Shown piece after piece: positions 1 through 6,902 of a DNA stretch of 6,902 nucleotides. The notes under the pieces were generated by a model. The model saw nothing but the letters and a program-made list of their open reading frames with translations, searched no databases and was not told where the DNA came from. The DNA is taken from positions 1 through 6,902 of the IMG/VR virus record IMGVR_UViG_3300024432_000267; one strand, written 5' to 3'. Position 1 is the stretch's first letter; every line of letters starts with the position of its first letter. The position numbers were made by a program, and so were the translations under genes.

Positions 1-201
1 TTATTCACTTTTATTCTTTATAGTTAAAAATAAATAAATATTAAATGTAAATACTAAAAAAGATATTAAATTTAATATAACAAAATAAATATTATATATA
101 ATTAACCAAAATATAATATTTAAAAAATTATAATAAGATATTATACTAAATATAATTAAATATAATATTATAATAAAAGGATAATTTTTCTTTTTTATCA
201 T
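1..201 (-). CDS. Small hydrophobic membrane protein (66 aa), hypothetical
   Basis: The ATG overlaps the methyltransferase stop (TAATG). Basic N-terminus, 2-3 hydrophobic stretches and a basic tail. The DNA is only ~8% GC (16/201), so the composition is low-complexity. Confidence 0.55.
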   Translation of the reverse strand: MIKKKNYPFIIILYLIIFSIISYYNFLNIIFWLIIYNIYFVILNLISFLVFTFNIYLFLTIKNKSE

Positions 202-737
202 TATTTAACCAAAATTATTTTTATACATTGACATGGAAAGATTCTTAAAAAAGTTCTTTCATAACTATTTTGTTTTTGATAAGATTTATTTATTTTATTA
301 TATAATAATCTTAAAAATGTTTTTAATATAGGAATTTTAGATTGTTCAATTTCAAGTCTAATATATATTTTTGAAAAGAAATTTATATTTCTTTCATACG
401 CAAACTTACCTTTATCTATAAAATAATAAAATGTATTACTTGAAAATTGATTTATATGTGTTGGCTCAGCATAATTACTTCTTGAAGTAAAATGTGGTAT
501 TCTAATTCTTAATATACCATTCTTTTTTAAGATTCTGTATAATTCATTCATTAATGGAAAATAATTAATATGCTCTAAAATATCCTTACATAAAATATAA
601 TCAAAATAATTATCATTAAAAGGTAAAGGTAATTTATTTAAATTATGAATAACATTTACGCCTTTTTTAAATATTATATCTAAATTTATCCAATTCTTTC
701 TAATATCGTTTCCACAACCTAAATTAAGTTTAAGCAT
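201..737 (-). CDS. Class I SAM-dependent methyltransferase (Methyltransf_11-like, the type common in glycan-modification loci)
   Basis: 178 aa. Motif I LNLGCG, then WINLD, LPLPFNDNYFDYI, ILEHI, ELYRILKKNG and IPH...EPTH. No DPPY/NPPY or PCQ-type catalytic motif in the position expected of a DNA methyltransferase. Confidence 0.9.
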   Translation of the reverse strand: MLKLNLGCGNDIRKNWINLDIIFKKGVNVIHNLNKLPLPFNDNYFDYILCKDILEHINYFPLMNELYRILKKNGILRIRIPHFTSRSNYAEPTHINQFSSNTFYYFIDKGKFAYERNINFFSKIYIRLEIEQSKIPILKTFLRLLYNKINKSYQKQNSYERTFLRIFPCQCIKIILVK

Positions 738-1222: not shown

Positions 1223-1387
1223 TTAAGGATAAATAATTTTTATTATATAAATTAATAATTGTACTTCTCTTTCATTTAGTCTTAAACTTATCCATTTATT
1301 TATAGCTTTAAGATTAATAAATATTCTTAATCCTTTACCTTTATATTTTTCAATTTTTAATCTTTTACTTATTTTAATTGTTATCAA
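1223..1387 (-). CDS. Small basic hypothetical protein (54 aa), not in the ORF track
   Basis: The open frame fills the ATPase-to-next-gene gap: (MITIK)ISKRLKIEKYKGKGLRIFINLKAINKWISLRLNEREVQLLIYIIKIIYP*. Start is TTG at 1387 (AGGA upstream) or ATA at 1372; stop TAA at 1225-1223. Confidence 0.55.
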   Translation of the reverse strand: MITIKISKRLKIEKYKGKGLRIFINLKAINKWISLRLNEREVQLLIYIIKIIYP

Positions 1388-2087
1388 TATTAATCAATCC
1401 TTTTAGATATATATATATAAATTTTTCATAGCCAATTTCAAAACCATTTAGAAGTAAGGATGTTTTAATAGAATCATGTGTTATAACCTTTAACATAGGA
1501 TTTATAATTTTGGAAATTTCTTTAATTTTTTTTAACATTGCTTTAGGATTATCTTTTAAAATATTGAATTCTAATCTACTTCTTTTTTGCGGTTCTATGA
1601 TTTCATAAGTATCATAAAGTTTAAAATACTTTTCGGCTTTTTTATAAGGAATCATAAAACTCTTTTCTGTATTAGTATCAATATCTCTATAAAGATAATA
1701 AAAATCATCTTTTTTAAAATTAATTCTTGTTTGACATTCTATTATTATATTAGCCAAATGTCGTGCTCTTTTATCCATACTTGAAAACATTTGAGCTGTT
1801 AAATAAATGTCTAAGTGTCTTTTTCTTTTTTGATAAATAAGATAACTTGTTAATAGATTTAAAGCATTGCCAGAAGTTCTTGATTCTAACCAAGTGTATG
1901 CTTCATCTAAAAAAATATTTCCTTCTTTAAGTTTATCCATATTTAATAAATCATTTATAGTGAAAGGAATATAATTATCAAGTTCAAGTTTATAATTACT
2001 ATATATATTTTTACTAAATTTAGTACCATAAAAAAGTAATAAAAAACTTTTACCACTTCCATTATTACCTAATAAAAAGATTAACAT
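1374..2087 (-). CDS. Zot/pI-like P-loop ATPase, putative virion morphogenesis/extrusion ATPase
   Basis: 237 aa. Walker A GNNGSGKS directly after the first beta strand, then IYSNY, Walker B IFLDEA, QKRKRHLDIYLTAQ (RK...hhhTxQ), MDKRAR (DxxxR) and LYDT. These motifs and their order are typical of the Zot/pI family. No TM segment. Confidence 0.88.
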   Translation of the reverse strand: MLIFLLGNNGSGKSFLLLFYGTKFSKNIYSNYKLELDNYIPFTINDLLNMDKLKEGNIFLDEAYTWLESRTSGNALNLLTSYLIYQKRKRHLDIYLTAQMFSSMDKRARHLANIIIECQTRINFKKDDFYYLYRDIDTNTEKSFMIPYKKAEKYFKLYDTYEIIEPQKRSRLEFNILKDNPKAMLKKIKEISKIINPMLKVITHDSIKTSLLLNGFEIGYEKFIYIYLKGLINIDNN

Positions 2088-2428
2088 TATACTATTTTTG
2101 TAGTCATTTTTTCCGCGTTAGATAATCTTTCTTTTTCAAGAATAGATGATATAGCTTTAATTATCTCTATTCTACTTAACCTTTTATAACTTACCATTAA
2201 ACGCTTAAAATGTTTCATAAATGATTTTATTAAATCTGATGATTTAGTTAAACCAATGATTTTTAAATATTCTTGTATTACAACTAAACCAGCTAATTGT
2301 TTTGGTTTAAAAATATGTGTTTTTAAATCTAAATTTTTGTCGCCTTCTATTAGATTGTTTAATATTTTTTGTAAGGAAATATCTTTTGTTGGAATTACTT
2401 CATTCATATATTCTCTTAATTCTGCCAT
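2087..2428 (-). CDS. Small soluble helical protein coupled to the ATPase gene (113 aa), hypothetical
   Basis: Start reassigned to MAELREY at ATG 2428, which is 1 nt after the upstream stop and preceded by GGGTGG. The stop overlaps the ATPase start (TAATG). C-terminal motif VSYKRLSRIEIIKAI. Confidence 0.8.
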   Translation of the reverse strand: MAELREYMNEVIPTKDISLQKILNNLIEGDKNLDLKTHIFKPKQLAGLVVIQEYLKIIGLTKSSDLIKSFMKHFKRLMVSYKRLSRIEIIKAISSILEKERLSNAEKMTTKIV

Positions 2429-2429
2429 T

Positions 2430-2837
2430 TTAAGCAAAACCACCCGCAATCCAGCCAATTGCTCCGCCTAAAGCTAATCCAAATATTACATACATTAAAT
2501 TAGTTCTAAAAGCGGAATCAGTTAAATTAGTTGTTAATTGTTTTATTATATGTTTTCCTATAATCATATCAATATCATCTGGGGTTATCTTAGAACTTCC
2601 TTTCTTTTTAATAAAAGATAATTGACAATCATCTGATTTATCAATATCAATAAAAAAGAATAATTTTAAAACTTTTGAATATGTCGGATTAGTTATATTA
2701 ATAATATATGTTTTATCTCTAAAACTAATTTCTGTAGTTGTTGGTTGTATTCTTTTGCTTTTTATAACTGTATATATTTCTTTTTCCTTTATTAAGAATC
2801 TAACAATATATTTTTTCTTTAATATTTTATTTAACAT
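2430..2837 (-). CDS. Tail-anchored membrane protein with a basic soluble domain, hypothetical assembly factor
   Basis: 135 aa. Lys-rich soluble N-terminal region and a single Gly-rich C-terminal TM helix (LMYVIFGLALGGAIGWIAGGFA) with GxxxG spacing. Confidence 0.8.
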   Translation of the reverse strand: MLNKILKKKYIVRFLIKEKEIYTVIKSKRIQPTTTEISFRDKTYIINITNPTYSKVLKLFFFIDIDKSDDCQLSFIKKKGSSKITPDDIDMIIGKHIIKQLTTNLTDSAFRTNLMYVIFGLALGGAIGWIAGGFA

Positions 2838-2848
2838 TTTCTTTACTC

Positions 2849-3085
2849 TTATTTATAGATTTCTAAGCTTTTAATTATAAAAATTGATAATTGAAATAAT
2901 ATAAAAAATAATGAAAAGTATGGAATAAATGGTAAGCTAATTATTGCTATTGACATAAATCCTATTATTAATGAAAATAAAAACAAAATTAGAGTAGGAA
3001 GGAATTTTTCTATTTTCTGATATAAATATAACATTAAAATAATTAATGATAACATTATTAAAATAACAGCAAACATAAAACTCAT
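2849..3085 (-). CDS. Small 3-TM membrane protein, paralog B of a tandem pair
   Basis: 78 aa from the ATG, with 30/69 identities to paralog A by hand alignment. The frame stays open upstream to 3145, so the start could be ATT at 3139 (MPANPFPECTCEAQAIILMSF...). Confidence 0.8.
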   Translation of the reverse strand: MSFMFAVILIMLSLIILMLYLYQKIEKFLPTLILFLFSLIIGFMSIAIISLPFIPYFSLFFILFQLSIFIIKSLEIYK

Positions 3086-3145
3086 TAGGATTATTGCTTG
3101 AGCTTCACAAGTACATTCTGGAAAAGGATTTGCGGGAATTTTTAA

Positions 3146-3409
3146 TCATCTCTTAAATACTTTAATTGTTTTTACTATTAAAAATAATAATTGAGTTAAG
3201 ATAAAGAATGTAGAAGTATAAGGATTAAAAGGAATATAATTTAAAGATAATGTACTTATACCTAATATAAGAGAAATTAAGAAAATAAATAAAACAAATA
3301 TCCAAATCTTTATTATTCTATATACAAATATCATAGTAATTATCAAACTAAGAAATATGACTATTATTATAATAGGTTTTAAAATATCATTCATACTTAA
3401 TAAATCCAT
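3146..3409 (-). CDS. Small 3-TM membrane protein, paralog A of a tandem pair
   Basis: 87 aa. ATG preceded by GGAGTAGGA. Aligns without gaps to the next ORF (LSLIIxM, FLxSLIxG, PFxPYxSxFFILxQL). Confidence 0.8.
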   Translation of the reverse strand: MDLLSMNDILKPIIIIVIFLSLIITMIFVYRIIKIWIFVLFIFLISLILGISTLSLNYIPFNPYTSTFFILTQLLFLIVKTIKVFKR

Positions 3410-3411
3410 TT

Positions 3412-3822
3412 TTATCCTACTCCACTCATTTTTTCTATAACTCCAATTGTATAACCTATTGTTAAAGCTGTATAAATTAATGTGCCAAAAAGTTCAATAC
3501 TAAATAAAAGTGGCATAGCTAAAACACTTAAAAACATCCAAATACCTATATAACATAATGCGACACATACAATCCTTATAGAATCATCAGATAATCCAGA
3601 GCCCAGAATCCTTAATCCTAAAAGTACTACACCAACAGCAACAATACTTATTAACACTATAGCTCCTAATAAAGGATCAAAATTAAAAGATATAGGAGTT
3701 AATTCAGTCAATTCAACTGCCAAGCTCTCTTGACCAATAAATAAACCTATAAACTCATTTCCTAATACTAAAGAAAGAATGCTCAGAATTACTAAAGGTA
3801 ATATACATATACTTATTAGCAA
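3412..3822 (-). CDS. Polytopic membrane protein (about 4 TM), probable virion/assembly protein
   Basis: 136 aa. TTG start 1 nt after the upstream stop, with SD-like AAGTGAG. N-terminal hydrophobic helix, acidic loop, then three helices with a GLRILGSGLSDD turn. Confidence 0.78.
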   Translation of the reverse strand: MLISICILPLVILSILSLVLGNEFIGLFIGQESLAVELTELTPISFNFDPLLGAIVLISIVAVGVVLLGLRILGSGLSDDSIRIVCVALCYIGIWMFLSVLAMPLLFSIELFGTLIYTALTIGYTIGVIEKMSGVG

Positions 3823-3823
3823 A

Positions 3824-4048
3824 TTATCTCACTTGATTATTTTTTAATTCAAAATACATAATAAATGTTAATACTACAATATTTAATATTAATGTCCAAT
3901 AAGGTAAAAAGCCAGCATATACAACAAAAGCATTAAAAAAAGTTAAGAAAACAAAGAATCCTTTTATATTATCAATTGTATAATGGTTTAGAACTAATGC
4001 TAATCCAAACATTATAGCAATTCCAAAAATCCAATTAGTTTCAATCAT
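3824..4048 (-). CDS. Small 3-TM membrane protein, probable minor virion/assembly protein
   Basis: 74 aa with three hydrophobic segments and a GFLPYW turn before TM3. The ATG is 2 nt after the adhesin stop. Confidence 0.75.
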   Translation of the reverse strand: MIETNWIFGIAIMFGLALVLNHYTIDNIKGFFVFLTFFNAFVVYAGFLPYWTLILNIVVLTFIMYFELKNNQVR

Positions 4049-4050
4049 TC

Positions 4051-6447
4051 TTAATCAAAACCACTTTTTTTATATTGTATAAATATTCCGCAACCATAAC
4101 ATAATAACATTATAAAGAATAATTCAAAAGGAATTAATAAAGCAACATAACAAATAATACTCATTAATATAAGTATAGGAATAACAATTTCCTTTTTTCT
4201 ATAAACAGAGTATATTCCTATTGTCGGAGCAATTATTATAATTAATGGAATCATAATAGCAAGTAAACTAATGATTATAAAATCAGTTTTTCCCGCGATT
4301 CCATAAAGTTTATACTGAAATTGTAATCCAGATATATAACCTTTTCCTATACAATTTGTATAATTATTATTTTCATTATCGAAAATTACAAAATAAAAAC
4401 GACTAAATTCTTTACCACGTTGTAATAATGTATTGATTGTTGTTTCATAAGTTTTTAAATAAAAGCGGTCATTTGGTGGTTGAAAATAACTCATATCTAT
4501 ATAAGCACTTCCAATAGTAGAAGATAACTCTCTACATTTAAAATTAATAATCATATAATCTGATGAAATATGCCTTATAAAATCAAAATAAAACATCATA
4601 TATTCTGATGTATCATTTTGAGTTATATCAAAATGATAATTTAATCTATTTGAATTGTCTACATAATAATAACTCTTATTGTTTAAATTATGATAATAAT
4701 ATTGAATTGTTATTACATGACTAAAAACATTATCAATATATTTGTTTAATTTAACACGTTCTATTAAAAGAGATAAAGATTTACTTAAATTAAAATTTGA
4801 TTGAATAATTAAAAATAAATAAGGTTTCTCAATTATACGCTCATCATCATGGAAATTATAGCAAAAACTATTATTATCAAATTCATTAAGTATTTCATTA
4901 GAGTATAATCCTTCTATTTTTCCAAAAGCAATTATTTTTATTGTTTGATTATAAGCATTAACCGAAAATACATTATGATGATTAAGATTCCAATTATCTA
5001 TTAATTCATAACTTAAATAACCATATTCTCTACACATAGAAATATTATATTGATATATTCCTATATAGTTTAATCTTAAATGATAATAATCTGTATTTGA
5101 AGTAGGATCATAACTAAAAAAGTCAATTCGATTTATACCTTTTAAATTACTTATTAAAGGAAAAGAATAAGTAGTAGTATAATCATCAGTTCTATACCAA
5201 GATAAATTAACATTGAAATTATATATATACAAATTAAATTCAAGAACTCTATTAGCATCAAGACCATGAATACTTACTAAATCTTGATAAGAACTTCCAT
5301 CATAATACTGTAAATCTGTATCTTGATTAGTTTGAGTATCAAATCTTAATCTTATTATTTCAGTATTATTTAAACTATAAATTTTAAAAAGAGTATAAGA
5401 ATTTATCTCATTCATATTAGTAATTTGAAATCCTAATGTAATATTAAATTTATCTTGAGTTAATCCTAATGATTGATTATATATACCCGTATCAGAACCA
5501 TCAAGACTACTATGAATAGTTATTCCATTTATGTTTTTTGTTTTGTTAGCTGTAAAATCTGGCGTATCTGGAAATACATCATAATTATATTGACTATAAC
5601 GTATCCAGAAATCTACTTCTGGAAATCCAAGTTGAGCATAAGGATTACCATTATCATTTAAATTAAATTCATATTTATCTTTTGTAAGAATATTAGAATC
5701 TACTTCTTGAATATTTGGATATTTATTATCATCAATAGTATAATTAGTTGACCAAGAATATCCAATAGCATCTAAACATAAACTATAAACTTCTGTAGAA
5801 GCAACAAGATAATCTACTCTATTAATCTCAATATCATTAGTATAAAAATTATAATTTCCTTCATTATAATTATTTATATATACATCAAAAGTATCTGTAA
5901 TACAATCAAAACTTAATTTAAGATGATACCATTGATTATTTACGGGAATTGTATCTAATATAAATGGATTAGCACCGTTATATATTCTAAATATATTAGC
6001 TACACTATTAAATATTACGCATTGAGTTGCTCCATTCATAAGTCTAATACTAATAGATTGAGATACATCGCTTATAGAAAACCATAATTCTACAATTCCC
6101 GATACTTGAGAACCTTCATAAAATATTTGTTCACATTGAGCGTCATTTGAATTTATAACACTTAGATTAAGAATAGTTTGATGTTTATTAAAATAAGATT
6201 GAACTGAAGTATTAGCGGGAGATACGCTTAAATCATTCCAACCAATAGGAAAACCAGAATCATTAATAAAACTATATGTTCCATTATAATCACCCGTAAT
6301 GATATTATTATGTCTTAAATTCATTTTAGATTTATTTACAGAATCAACAAGACTATCTTTTTCGAAGTCATAACGTAAAATATCTGATGATGTAGCATTA
6401 ACCTTAGGAATTAAAATAATTCCTATTAGAAATGAAGTAATAACCAA
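4051..6447 (-). CDS. Large membrane-anchored surface glycoprotein, putative receptor-binding adhesin/spike with LamG/concanavalin A-like beta-sandwich domains
   Basis: 798 aa from the TTG start; the true start is probably an ATT near 6483-6486. Signal peptide ends in V-N-A. The ectodomain is rich in N/Y/S/T and beta-like, with LamG-like motifs (SGIVELWF; NNQWYHLKLSFD...FDVYIN). About 19 N-x-S/T sequons counted by eye. Three C-terminal hydrophobic segments and a KK-containing tail. Confidence 0.75.
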   Translation of the reverse strand: MVITSFLIGIILIPKVNATSSDILRYDFEKDSLVDSVNKSKMNLRHNNIITGDYNGTYSFINDSGFPIGWNDLSVSPANTSVQSYFNKHQTILNLSVINSNDAQCEQIFYEGSQVSGIVELWFSISDVSQSISIRLMNGATQCVIFNSVANIFRIYNGANPFILDTIPVNNQWYHLKLSFDCITDTFDVYINNYNEGNYNFYTNDIEINRVDYLVASTEVYSLCLDAIGYSWSTNYTIDDNKYPNIQEVDSNILTKDKYEFNLNDNGNPYAQLGFPEVDFWIRYSQYNYDVFPDTPDFTANKTKNINGITIHSSLDGSDTGIYNQSLGLTQDKFNITLGFQITNMNEINSYTLFKIYSLNNTEIIRLRFDTQTNQDTDLQYYDGSSYQDLVSIHGLDANRVLEFNLYIYNFNVNLSWYRTDDYTTTYSFPLISNLKGINRIDFFSYDPTSNTDYYHLRLNYIGIYQYNISMCREYGYLSYELIDNWNLNHHNVFSVNAYNQTIKIIAFGKIEGLYSNEILNEFDNNSFCYNFHDDERIIEKPYLFLIIQSNFNLSKSLSLLIERVKLNKYIDNVFSHVITIQYYYHNLNNKSYYYVDNSNRLNYHFDITQNDTSEYMMFYFDFIRHISSDYMIINFKCRELSSTIGSAYIDMSYFQPPNDRFYLKTYETTINTLLQRGKEFSRFYFVIFDNENNNYTNCIGKGYISGLQFQYKLYGIAGKTDFIIISLLAIMIPLIIIIAPTIGIYSVYRKKEIVIPILILMSIICYVALLIPFELFFIMLLCYGCGIFIQYKKSGFD

Positions 6448-6476
6448 TAATAGAATAAATGATACACTTTTATTCT

Positions 6477-6617
6477 TTAAAATAATAATTTACACCAAAT
6501 TGATATAATTATAAATATAGAAGTTGTAATAAGACATGAAATTCCAGATAAAAGATTATTAGACATTTTAAGTAATTTCTTATCTAATTCTAATCTCTCT
6601 TGTTCATTTTCAGTCAT
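6477..6617 (-). CDS. Small membrane protein (46 aa), charged N-terminus and one C-terminal TM helix
   Basis: MTENEQERLELDKKLLKMSNNLLSGISCLITTSIFIIISIWCKLLF. The ATG at 6617 is preceded by SD-like AAGGT. The track's start at 6665 only adds a translation of the T-tract. Confidence 0.6.
   Translation of the reverse strand: MTENEQERLELDKKLLKMSNNLLSGISCLITTSIFIIISIWCKLLF
6493..6496 (-). promoter_or_regulatory. SD-like GGTG upstream of the proposed ATT start of the adhesin gene
   Basis: Minus strand TTTGGTGTAAATTATTATTTTAAAG. GGTG lies 6 nt before ATT(6486) and 9 nt before ATT(6483), both in frame with the 798-aa ORF. Confidence 0.4.
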
Positions 6618-6630
6618 AAATATTAACCTT

Positions 6631-6656
6631 AAAAATAAAAAAATAAAGAATAAAAG
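6631..6656 (-). terminator. Oligo-T tract after the capsid gene, candidate archaeal-type partial terminator
   Basis: Minus strand CTTTTATTCTTTATTTTTTTATTTTT begins ~10 nt after the capsid stop and contains a T7 run with no hairpin. This is one of the few non-coding-looking gaps in the array. Confidence 0.45.
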
Positions 6657-6665
6657 ATTAAACAT

Positions 6666-6902
6666 TCAATCGCTTATTCTTGGTAAAAAATACATGGTAA
6701 TACTGATTACTGCCAAAATTGGCAATAATACAGTAAGCAAAGTCAAAACCGCTGGATCGCATACATCCGCTAAAGTTTGATTGTCAGCATTAATAATAAC
6801 ATCACCAGCTCCAGAGATTAATCCAATCGCAAGTGGTAAAATTGTTGCGATAACAATTAGACTAATTGCGATAAGAATTACTTGCTTAACATTAGCTCCC
6901 AT
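6666..6902 (-). CDS. Putative major capsid protein, spindle-shaped-virus type (two hydrophobic helices forming a hairpin)
   Basis: 78 aa. Helix 1 VILIAISLIVIATILPLAIGLI, a polar loop with an N-Q-T sequon, helix 2 AVLTLLTVLLPILAVISITMYFL, then a short charged tail (PRISD). The length, the Pro late in helix 1 (ILP), the loop sequon and the TLLxxxxP pattern recall mature SSV1 VP1. It is the first gene of the array and is GC-rich for this window (hand count 83/237, ~35%). The ATG is at the window edge, so an upstream extension cannot be excluded. Confidence 0.72.
   Translation of the reverse strand: MGANVKQVILIAISLIVIATILPLAIGLISGAGDVIINADNQTLADVCDPAVLTLLTVLLPILAVISITMYFLPRISD

Follow-up and report, generated by a model that had tools for sequence, protein, structure and literature searches.

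A 6,902-nt stretch of DNA of about 20% guanine-cytosine (GC) content, identical to the IMG/VR record IMGVR_UViG_3300024432_000267 and hereafter called the window, very probably carries the structural and morphogenesis module of a wyrdvirus together with a few accessory genes. Wyrdviruses have been proposed as a family of viruses of Asgard archaea and are relatives of the spindle-shaped His1 virus and Sulfolobus spindle-shaped virus (SSV). The gene content, gene order and sequence of the window match those of Lokiarchaeota virus WyrdV1 and its relatives. The virus is not new, because its parent contig, the Joint Genome Institute (JGI) contig Ga0209977_10002196 of 8,760 bp, was named and annotated as a wyrdvirus in 2021 by Medvedeva et al. 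('Viruses of Asgard archaea', bioRxiv 10.1101/2021.07.29.453957), who list it as a partial wyrdvirus genome with the replication module missing. The window is thus an already published partial wyrdvirus genome, and the IMG/VR record is a trimmed piece of it. The original prediction, made from the window sequence, was of a probable new spindle-shaped archaeal virus, with the wyrdviruses among the candidates listed; the spindle-virus type of the module stands and the novelty does not.

The gene-by-gene annotation of Ga0209977_10002196 in Table S5 of that study (bioRxiv 10.1101/2021.07.29.453957) comprises a His1-like major capsid protein (MCP; HHsearch 99.43), an adhesin with a 6-bladed beta-propeller, a 'conserved fusellovirus protein B277', an AAA+ ATPase related to pI (99.78), a carbohydrate O-methyltransferase and a Zn-finger protein. 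Copies of the contig with 100% DNA identity, exact ATPase included, are present in two other IMG data sets; these two further contigs therefore supply no independent variation.

Fifteen open reading frames (ORFs) of at least 40 aa tile the window, all on the minus strand, with a coding density of 98% and junctions between genes of -29 to +60 nt. With a GC content of about 20%, stop codons should occur at intervals of ~10 codons, and the open frames are therefore far beyond chance: an open frame of 798 codons would arise with a probability of ~1e-36. Ten ORFs, running from position 6902 down to 1374 and encoding proteins of 78, 62, 798, 74, 136, 87, 78, 135, 123 and 237 aa, make up the module. 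All ten have collinear homologues in divergent relatives, which bears out the predicted set of ten tightly packed, co-oriented genes. Between the 798-aa adhesin and the 237-aa ATPase lie six small proteins, five of which are membrane proteins: four are polytopic (74, 136, 87 and 78 aa), and the 135-aa protein has a single C-terminal membrane helix. Genes for an HK97 capsid, portal, terminase or tail had been predicted to be absent, and Pfam and PHROGs scans of the window proteins agree, with no match to an HK97 capsid, portal or tail protein and a single terminase match that covers only the P-loop (E=0.59). The module genes are as follows.

Positions 6666 to 6902, minus strand: MCP, His1-like, 78 aa, alpha-helical hairpin (homology, AlphaFold2 (AF2) model, profiles).
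Positions 6477 to 6665, minus strand: small protein with two hydrophobic segments, 62 aa (hydropathy, homologue in L010).
Positions 4051 to 6447, minus strand: adhesin or receptor-binding protein, 798 aa (WyrdV1 adhesin homology, hydropathy).
Positions 3824 to 4048, minus strand: conserved small membrane protein, 74 aa (hydrophobic; homologue of WyrdV1 gene 22).
Positions 3412 to 3822, minus strand: conserved polytopic membrane protein, 136 aa, with 3-4 hydrophobic segments (homologue of WyrdV1 gene 23).
Positions 3146 to 3409, minus strand: small membrane protein, 87 aa, paralogue A of a tandem pair (homologues in L010, L012 and L013).
Positions 2849 to 3085, minus strand: small membrane protein, 78 aa, paralogue B of the tandem pair (homologue of WyrdV1 gene 24).
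Positions 2430 to 2837, minus strand: tail-anchored protein, 135 aa (C-terminal hydrophobic segment; homologue of WyrdV1 gene 25).
Positions 2087 to 2458, minus strand: conserved soluble protein, 123 aa from a TTG start (homologue of WyrdV1 gene 26).
Positions 1374 to 2087, minus strand: Zot/pI-like P-loop ATPase, 237 aa, soluble (Pfam Zot, hhalign, AF2 and Foldseek).

Here and below, designations of the form L010 refer to related contigs. Gene-by-gene collinearity was assessed by tblastn against WyrdV1 (MZ666939) and Muninn virus (OM716000, Candidatus Odinarchaeum yellowstonii). Eight of the ten module genes have collinear matches in WyrdV1, at 27-56% amino acid identity. The order found in WyrdV1 and other wyrdviruses (MCP, small ORF, adhesin, small membrane genes, tail-anchored protein, soluble protein and pI-like ATPase, with a methyltransferase further on) is also that of the window, and each gene of a five-gene WyrdV1 block has a homologue here (35-56% identity) with the order unchanged, one of them being duplicated. 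The window shares with the wyrdviruses an MCP of ~80 aa that is two-helix and His1-like, an adhesin downstream of it, and a pI-related ATPase lacking transmembrane segments; their replication module is missing here, the contig being only a part of the genome. WyrdV1 differs in having two MCP genes where the window has one, in its GC content (28%) and in its methyltransferase, which comes from a different Pfam family. Muninn virus is more distant. Its MCP, 136-aa, 135-aa, 123-aa and ATPase homologues are collinear with those of the window at 29-43% identity, and it differs in possessing a protein-primed DNA polymerase of family B (PolB) and a 580-aa adhesin without detectable similarity to that of the window.

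The closest long relative that we found is L010 (European Nucleotide Archive ZHAN22-2 scaffold_2030, 17,369 bp), in which all ten genes are matched. The L010 MCP is 79% identical to that of the window, whereas the ATPase is only 39% identical, below the 44% identity of the WyrdV1 ATPase; this suggests recombination or mosaicism, or else very uneven rates, within the module. L010, like WyrdV1, has an array of short genes upstream of its MCP.

The 78-aa MCP has two hydrophobic helices by hydropathy, and its AF2 model (predicted local distance difference test, pLDDT, 77.6) is a helix-loop-helix hairpin with helices at residues 5-31 and 50-76. An NxT sequon lies in the variable loop, as in many relatives. 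The protein is 51-54% identical to both WyrdV1 MCPs and 43% identical to the Muninn virus MCP. When the MCP profile was compared with the His1-family profile, hhalign gave 75% (E=2.5e-5); the 64 aligned columns take in almost the whole length of either family. Pfam His1_capsid members account for 32 of the 67 remote matches of the wyrdvirus MCP profile (best E=7e-12), and next to them no family takes more than two of the 67. The hairpin model, the profile link to His1_capsid and the identity to the WyrdV1 MCPs uphold the prediction of a two-helix hydrophobic capsid protein of the spindle-virus type. A pilin had been named as the alternative; the link found was to His1_capsid and to no pilin family, pleolipovirus matrix proteins not having been compared directly. 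Kinship of the MCP with SSV1 VP3 was also considered, and profile comparison found no relation. Searched against PDB sequences, the MCP profile gave only chance matches to membrane proteins. The MCP found no counterpart when phage records were searched by tblastn; removal of this hydrophobic query by the low-complexity filter is the probable cause.

The 798-aa protein contains one N-terminal and two C-terminal hydrophobic segments and 19 NxS/T N-glycosylation sequons. Across about 740 aa it shares 27% identity with the WyrdV1 adhesin, and its counterparts in L010 and L012 are 38% and 23% identical to it; this homology, and the same position downstream of the MCP, confirm the large adhesin of the original prediction. 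It had no Pfam, NCBIfam or PDB sequence match. One relative of the adhesin showed a sub-threshold match to a sialidase-like carbohydrate-binding module.

The 62-aa length of the small protein between MCP and adhesin is counted from the first ATG; the JGI call of the same gene is 46 aa at 6477-6617. A homologue occupies the equivalent position in L010 (50-69% identity), phrog_9743 is matched at E=3.9e-5, and WyrdV1 has a 57-aa gene at the counterpart position. The 74-aa protein has kept its position and is 44% identical to WyrdV1 gene 22, 53-59% to L010 and 41% to L012. For the 136-aa protein the identities are 51% to WyrdV1 gene 23, 58% to L010 and 33-35% to Muninn virus. The 87-aa and 78-aa small membrane genes are tandem paralogues (39% identity, E=4e-11), and as a result of this duplication there are six genes between adhesin and ATPase, not the published 'block of five'. 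Paralogue B is 45% identical to the single WyrdV1 gene 24 and 48-56% identical to proteins of L012 and L010. Both copies are present in L010, with a 408-aa gene between them.

The 135-aa protein ends in a Gly-rich membrane helix (hydrophobic segment 113-135) that follows a soluble N-terminal domain. It has 35% identity to WyrdV1 gene 25, 37% to L010, and 27-34% to Muninn virus, L012, L013, L014 and L015. The published 'B277-like' label of this protein was not confirmed: hhalign to SSV1 B277 gave 20%, confined to the membrane helix. The 123-aa protein has no hydrophobic segment and bears an MVSYxRxSRxE motif. It is 56% identical to WyrdV1 gene 26 and has homologues in all seven related loci. 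Its start is ambiguous, identical DNA having been given three calls (123, 113 and 118 aa); an alternative ATG at 2428 would give 113 aa and remove the 29-nt overlap with the preceding gene. The 123-aa protein has no Pfam match, and profiles of the 123-aa and 135-aa proteins found nothing in the PDB.

The 237-aa ATPase scores 24.7 bits against Pfam Zot (PF05707), above the gathering cut-off of 20.3 bits, and its PHROG matches are annotated 'head morphogenesis', 'protein I of M13' and 'Zot-like'. Zot is matched by 20 of the 34 ATPase family members and a conjugative ATPase family by none of them, which speaks against the grouping with conjugative ATPases that had been raised as an alternative. 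The hhalign comparison of the ATPase profile with M13 pI gave 96.7% (E=4e-10), with residues 1-128 aligned to pI 1-158, the cytoplasmic ATPase domain only. The Walker A motif is GNNGSGKS at residues 7-14 and the Walker B motif is D61-E62; G7, G12 and K13 of the former and D61 and E62 of the latter are invariant. The AF2 model (pLDDT 90.5) matched the Neisseria Zot N-domain 2r2a in Foldseek (E=3.1e-8, template modelling score (TM-score) 0.59-0.60), and 2r2a is the only significant PDB sequence match of the protein. The predicted Zot/pI type of the ATPase is thus corroborated by the Pfam cut-off, by the M13 pI comparison and by fold. Similarity to SSV1 B251 is limited to the P-loop (16%), and that to His1 ORF16 is weak (69%, E=4.4e-5).

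The families of the MCP and of the ATPase alike comprise about 60 clusters at 90% identity, and for the MCP profile there are 152 representatives at a 50% identity level. Among species-representative genomes, searching with the ATPase profile led to collinear modules on whole contigs of 7.5-14 kb, which had been binned in one Promethearchaeia, one Hermodarchaeota and one Thermoplasmatota metagenome-assembled genome. The first two of these bins lend indirect support to an Asgard host. Two of the related contigs, L013 and L014, encode a protein-primed PolB (PF03175). Because the relatives lie on virus-sized contigs, two of them with this polymerase, the context of the module is, as read from these sequences, mobile and viral, and the possibility that it is a fixed chromosomal cassette, which had also been raised, is contradicted. 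L014 (JAWOGM010000025.1, 14,113 bp), with its PolB at 11145-12980, is the contig binned in Thermoplasmatota; either the binning is wrong or the host range extends outside the Asgard archaea. L014 is also rearranged: the MCP adjoins the genes of the 135-aa protein, the 123-aa protein and the ATPase, and the homologue of the 136-aa protein is encoded on the opposite strand.

Several observations weigh against the assignment of the window to a spindle-shaped wyrdvirus. The contig is incomplete, and in the 8.76 kb of this partial sequence we found no replicase or integrase gene and no terminal inverted or direct repeats. The assignment of a spindle shape and an Asgard host to this contig derives from its relatives, and we know of no virion that has been seen for any wyrdvirus sensu stricto. 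Taken by itself, the 78-aa MCP reaches only 9.3 bits (E=1.5) against Pfam His1_capsid (PF25665), below the cut-off of 27 bits; its relatedness to His1_capsid holds, at the level of sequence, solely in profile comparison and via intermediate sequences. A Foldseek search of the MCP model against PDB and BFVD returned nothing below E=3 and is uninformative because a two-helix hairpin is too simple a fold to discriminate. The ATPase lacks a hydrophobic or membrane segment, so that the membrane and periplasmic domains of pI are missing; absence of a membrane segment from the wyrdvirus ATPase was also described previously (bioRxiv 10.1101/2021.07.29.453957). Furthermore, the Foldseek match of the ATPase model to the packaging NTPase B204 of Sulfolobus turreted icosahedral virus 2 (STIV2; 4kfu_A, E=2.9e-8, TM-score 0.51) is essentially equal to that with 2r2a. 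Since the membrane and periplasmic domains of pI are missing and B204 fits equally well, the step powered by the ATPase may be either pI-like assembly or extrusion or B204-like packaging.

In a wyrdvirus, the 78-aa hairpin MCP and the small membrane proteins would insert into the host cytoplasmic membrane, and the adhesin, glycosylated and membrane-anchored, would sit at one tip of the virion and mediate host attachment. The soluble pI-type ATPase would probably be brought to the membrane by two conserved neighbours, the tail-anchored 135-aa protein and the soluble 123-aa protein, which are the obvious candidates for its tether or coupling partners given that it carries no anchor itself. The ATPase would use ATP to load viral DNA into the capsid-protein lattice growing at the membrane, and the release of virions would be non-lytic, through budding or extrusion, in line with reports on other spindle-shaped viruses. 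Assembly of an extrusion type, as originally predicted, or of a budding type is suggested by analogy, with the membrane and periplasmic parts of pI missing and no secretin gene found in the Pfam and PHROGs scans of the window. In inoviruses, a different kind of virus, the homologous P-loop ATPase domain of pI (Zot family, PF05707) is accompanied by a membrane helix and a periplasmic C-terminal domain that contacts the pIV secretin, whereas the window ATPase has neither, and pIV is absent. The genes of the 135-aa protein, the 123-aa protein and the ATPase abut or overlap in the window, the trio stays adjacent in the rearranged L014, and it is all of the module that the short contig L015 retains. 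Tentatively, and more as a possibility than an expectation, we suggest that the three proteins may constitute a 'split pI', in which anchor and coupling functions fused to the ATPase in filamentous phages would be supplied in trans.

The ATPase could instead package the genome, as a motor of the FtsK/HerA-A32 kind comparable to STIV B204 that pumps double-stranded DNA into a pre-formed or closing capsid. We regard this as unlikely. The model fits STIV2 B204 about as well as 2r2a, with the best Foldseek E-value, and the ATPase is soluble, as is B204. This tie in fold is weak evidence because both families are related ASCE P-loop folds, and the TM-scores are slightly higher for 2r2a. The sequence evidence favours Zot/pI (the Pfam threshold, the hhalign result with M13 pI, and 2r2a as sole significant PDB sequence match), whereas B204, which comes from an icosahedral, double-jelly-roll virus, has no sequence-level match to the ATPase.

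Two further alternatives concern the particle and the viral nature of the module. A pleomorphic, vesicle-like virion as in pleolipoviruses would have a formally similar gene set, in which a P-loop NTPase accompanies a small membrane protein and a large anchored spike, and no wyrdvirus particle has been imaged. It is nevertheless very improbable: the MCP family links to His1_capsid and to no other family, and the Asgard virus NMV3 (2026 preprint), which combines a His1-like MCP with a pI-like ATPase, has been associated with spindle-shaped particles on its host by cryo-electron tomography. That the window is a cellular or plasmid-borne cassette for membrane secretion or a pilus-like structure would accord with the lack of a replicase or integrase in the 8.76-kb contig and with the preponderance of small membrane proteins without an assigned family. 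We give this reading hardly any weight, since the module shares its gene order with WyrdV1, itself the target of a CRISPR spacer (bioRxiv 10.1101/2021.07.29.453957), relatives occur on virus-sized contigs with protein-primed PolB, the capsid family is linked to His1_capsid, and no pilin or conjugation family was matched.

With the window read as a wyrdvirus module, its resemblance to established families of spindle-shaped viruses is partial. His1 virus (Halspiviridae) has a two-helix capsid protein that falls in one family with the MCP by profile comparison; it infects haloarchaea, has a different gene order and shows no BLAST-level similarity in any gene. The terminal inverted repeats of the linear Halspiviridae genome and its protein-primed PolB are both missing from the 8.76-kb partial contig, whereas L013 and L014 encode such a polymerase. 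SSV1 (Fuselloviridae) is alike in general plan, with a small hydrophobic capsid protein, a large end-filament or adhesin protein and, according to the literature, non-lytic release. The window differs from the Fuselloviridae in lacking a VP3 match, in matching the DnaA-like ATPase B251 at the P-loop only and in the absence of an integrase from the contig.

Downstream of the ten-gene set, the window contains accessory genes, two of which are listed here.

Positions 1223 to 1387, minus strand: basic 54-aa ORF, outside the ten-gene set (nearly unchanged in L016).
Positions 201 to 737, minus strand: class I S-adenosylmethionine-dependent methyltransferase, 178 aa, downstream accessory gene outside the ten-gene set (Pfam PF08241).

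The 54-aa ORF overlaps the ATPase stop codon by 14 nt and had no family match. It is nearly unchanged in the sibling contig L016 (1553-1717), where the ATPase is markedly diverged, and for that reason it is probably a real, constrained gene. The methyltransferase is of the Methyltransf_11 type (E=6.5e-8) and has a 40%-identical homologue in L014 (613-1107). It shows no similarity to the Methyltransf_24/TylF-type enzyme at the analogous place in WyrdV1. An assignment of the 100-aa membrane protein at 911-1213 to DUF5658 or SSV1 A-102 was rejected (Pfam E=0.35, pairwise E=0.077, hhalign 0.2%), and a metagenome scan with this protein found one sibling contig only, from the same sample.

The IMG/VR trimming of the parent contig falls exactly on gene boundaries, positions 1-1357 and 8260-8760 having been removed. 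The trimmed flank encodes, on the opposite strand, a 177-aa CxxC...CxxC Zn-ribbon protein. Also in this flank, a divergent, AT-rich intergenic region of 421 nt contains the GC palindrome CAGGGCCCTG at about 1213-1222 of the parent contig. A 42-nt motif is present in the flank in two copies, at 365-406 and 1237-1278, that are 81% identical; the second lies ~80 nt upstream of the MCP start. Contig-level searches for transfer RNAs and Rfam families gave no matches.

The window adds one more partial member to the wyrdviruses, together with small details and no new principle. The small additions are the tandem duplication of a small membrane gene, the non-orthologous methyltransferase, and an ATPase model that fits STIV2 B204 as well as Zot. 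The wyrdvirus pI-like ATPase hints at a principle of assembly and egress common to these viruses and bacterial filamentous phages, for which credit belongs to the work of 2021-2022. If the 'split pI' proposal were true, the trio of the 135-aa protein, the 123-aa protein and the ATPase would be an archaeal membrane assembly and egress motor without a described counterpart.

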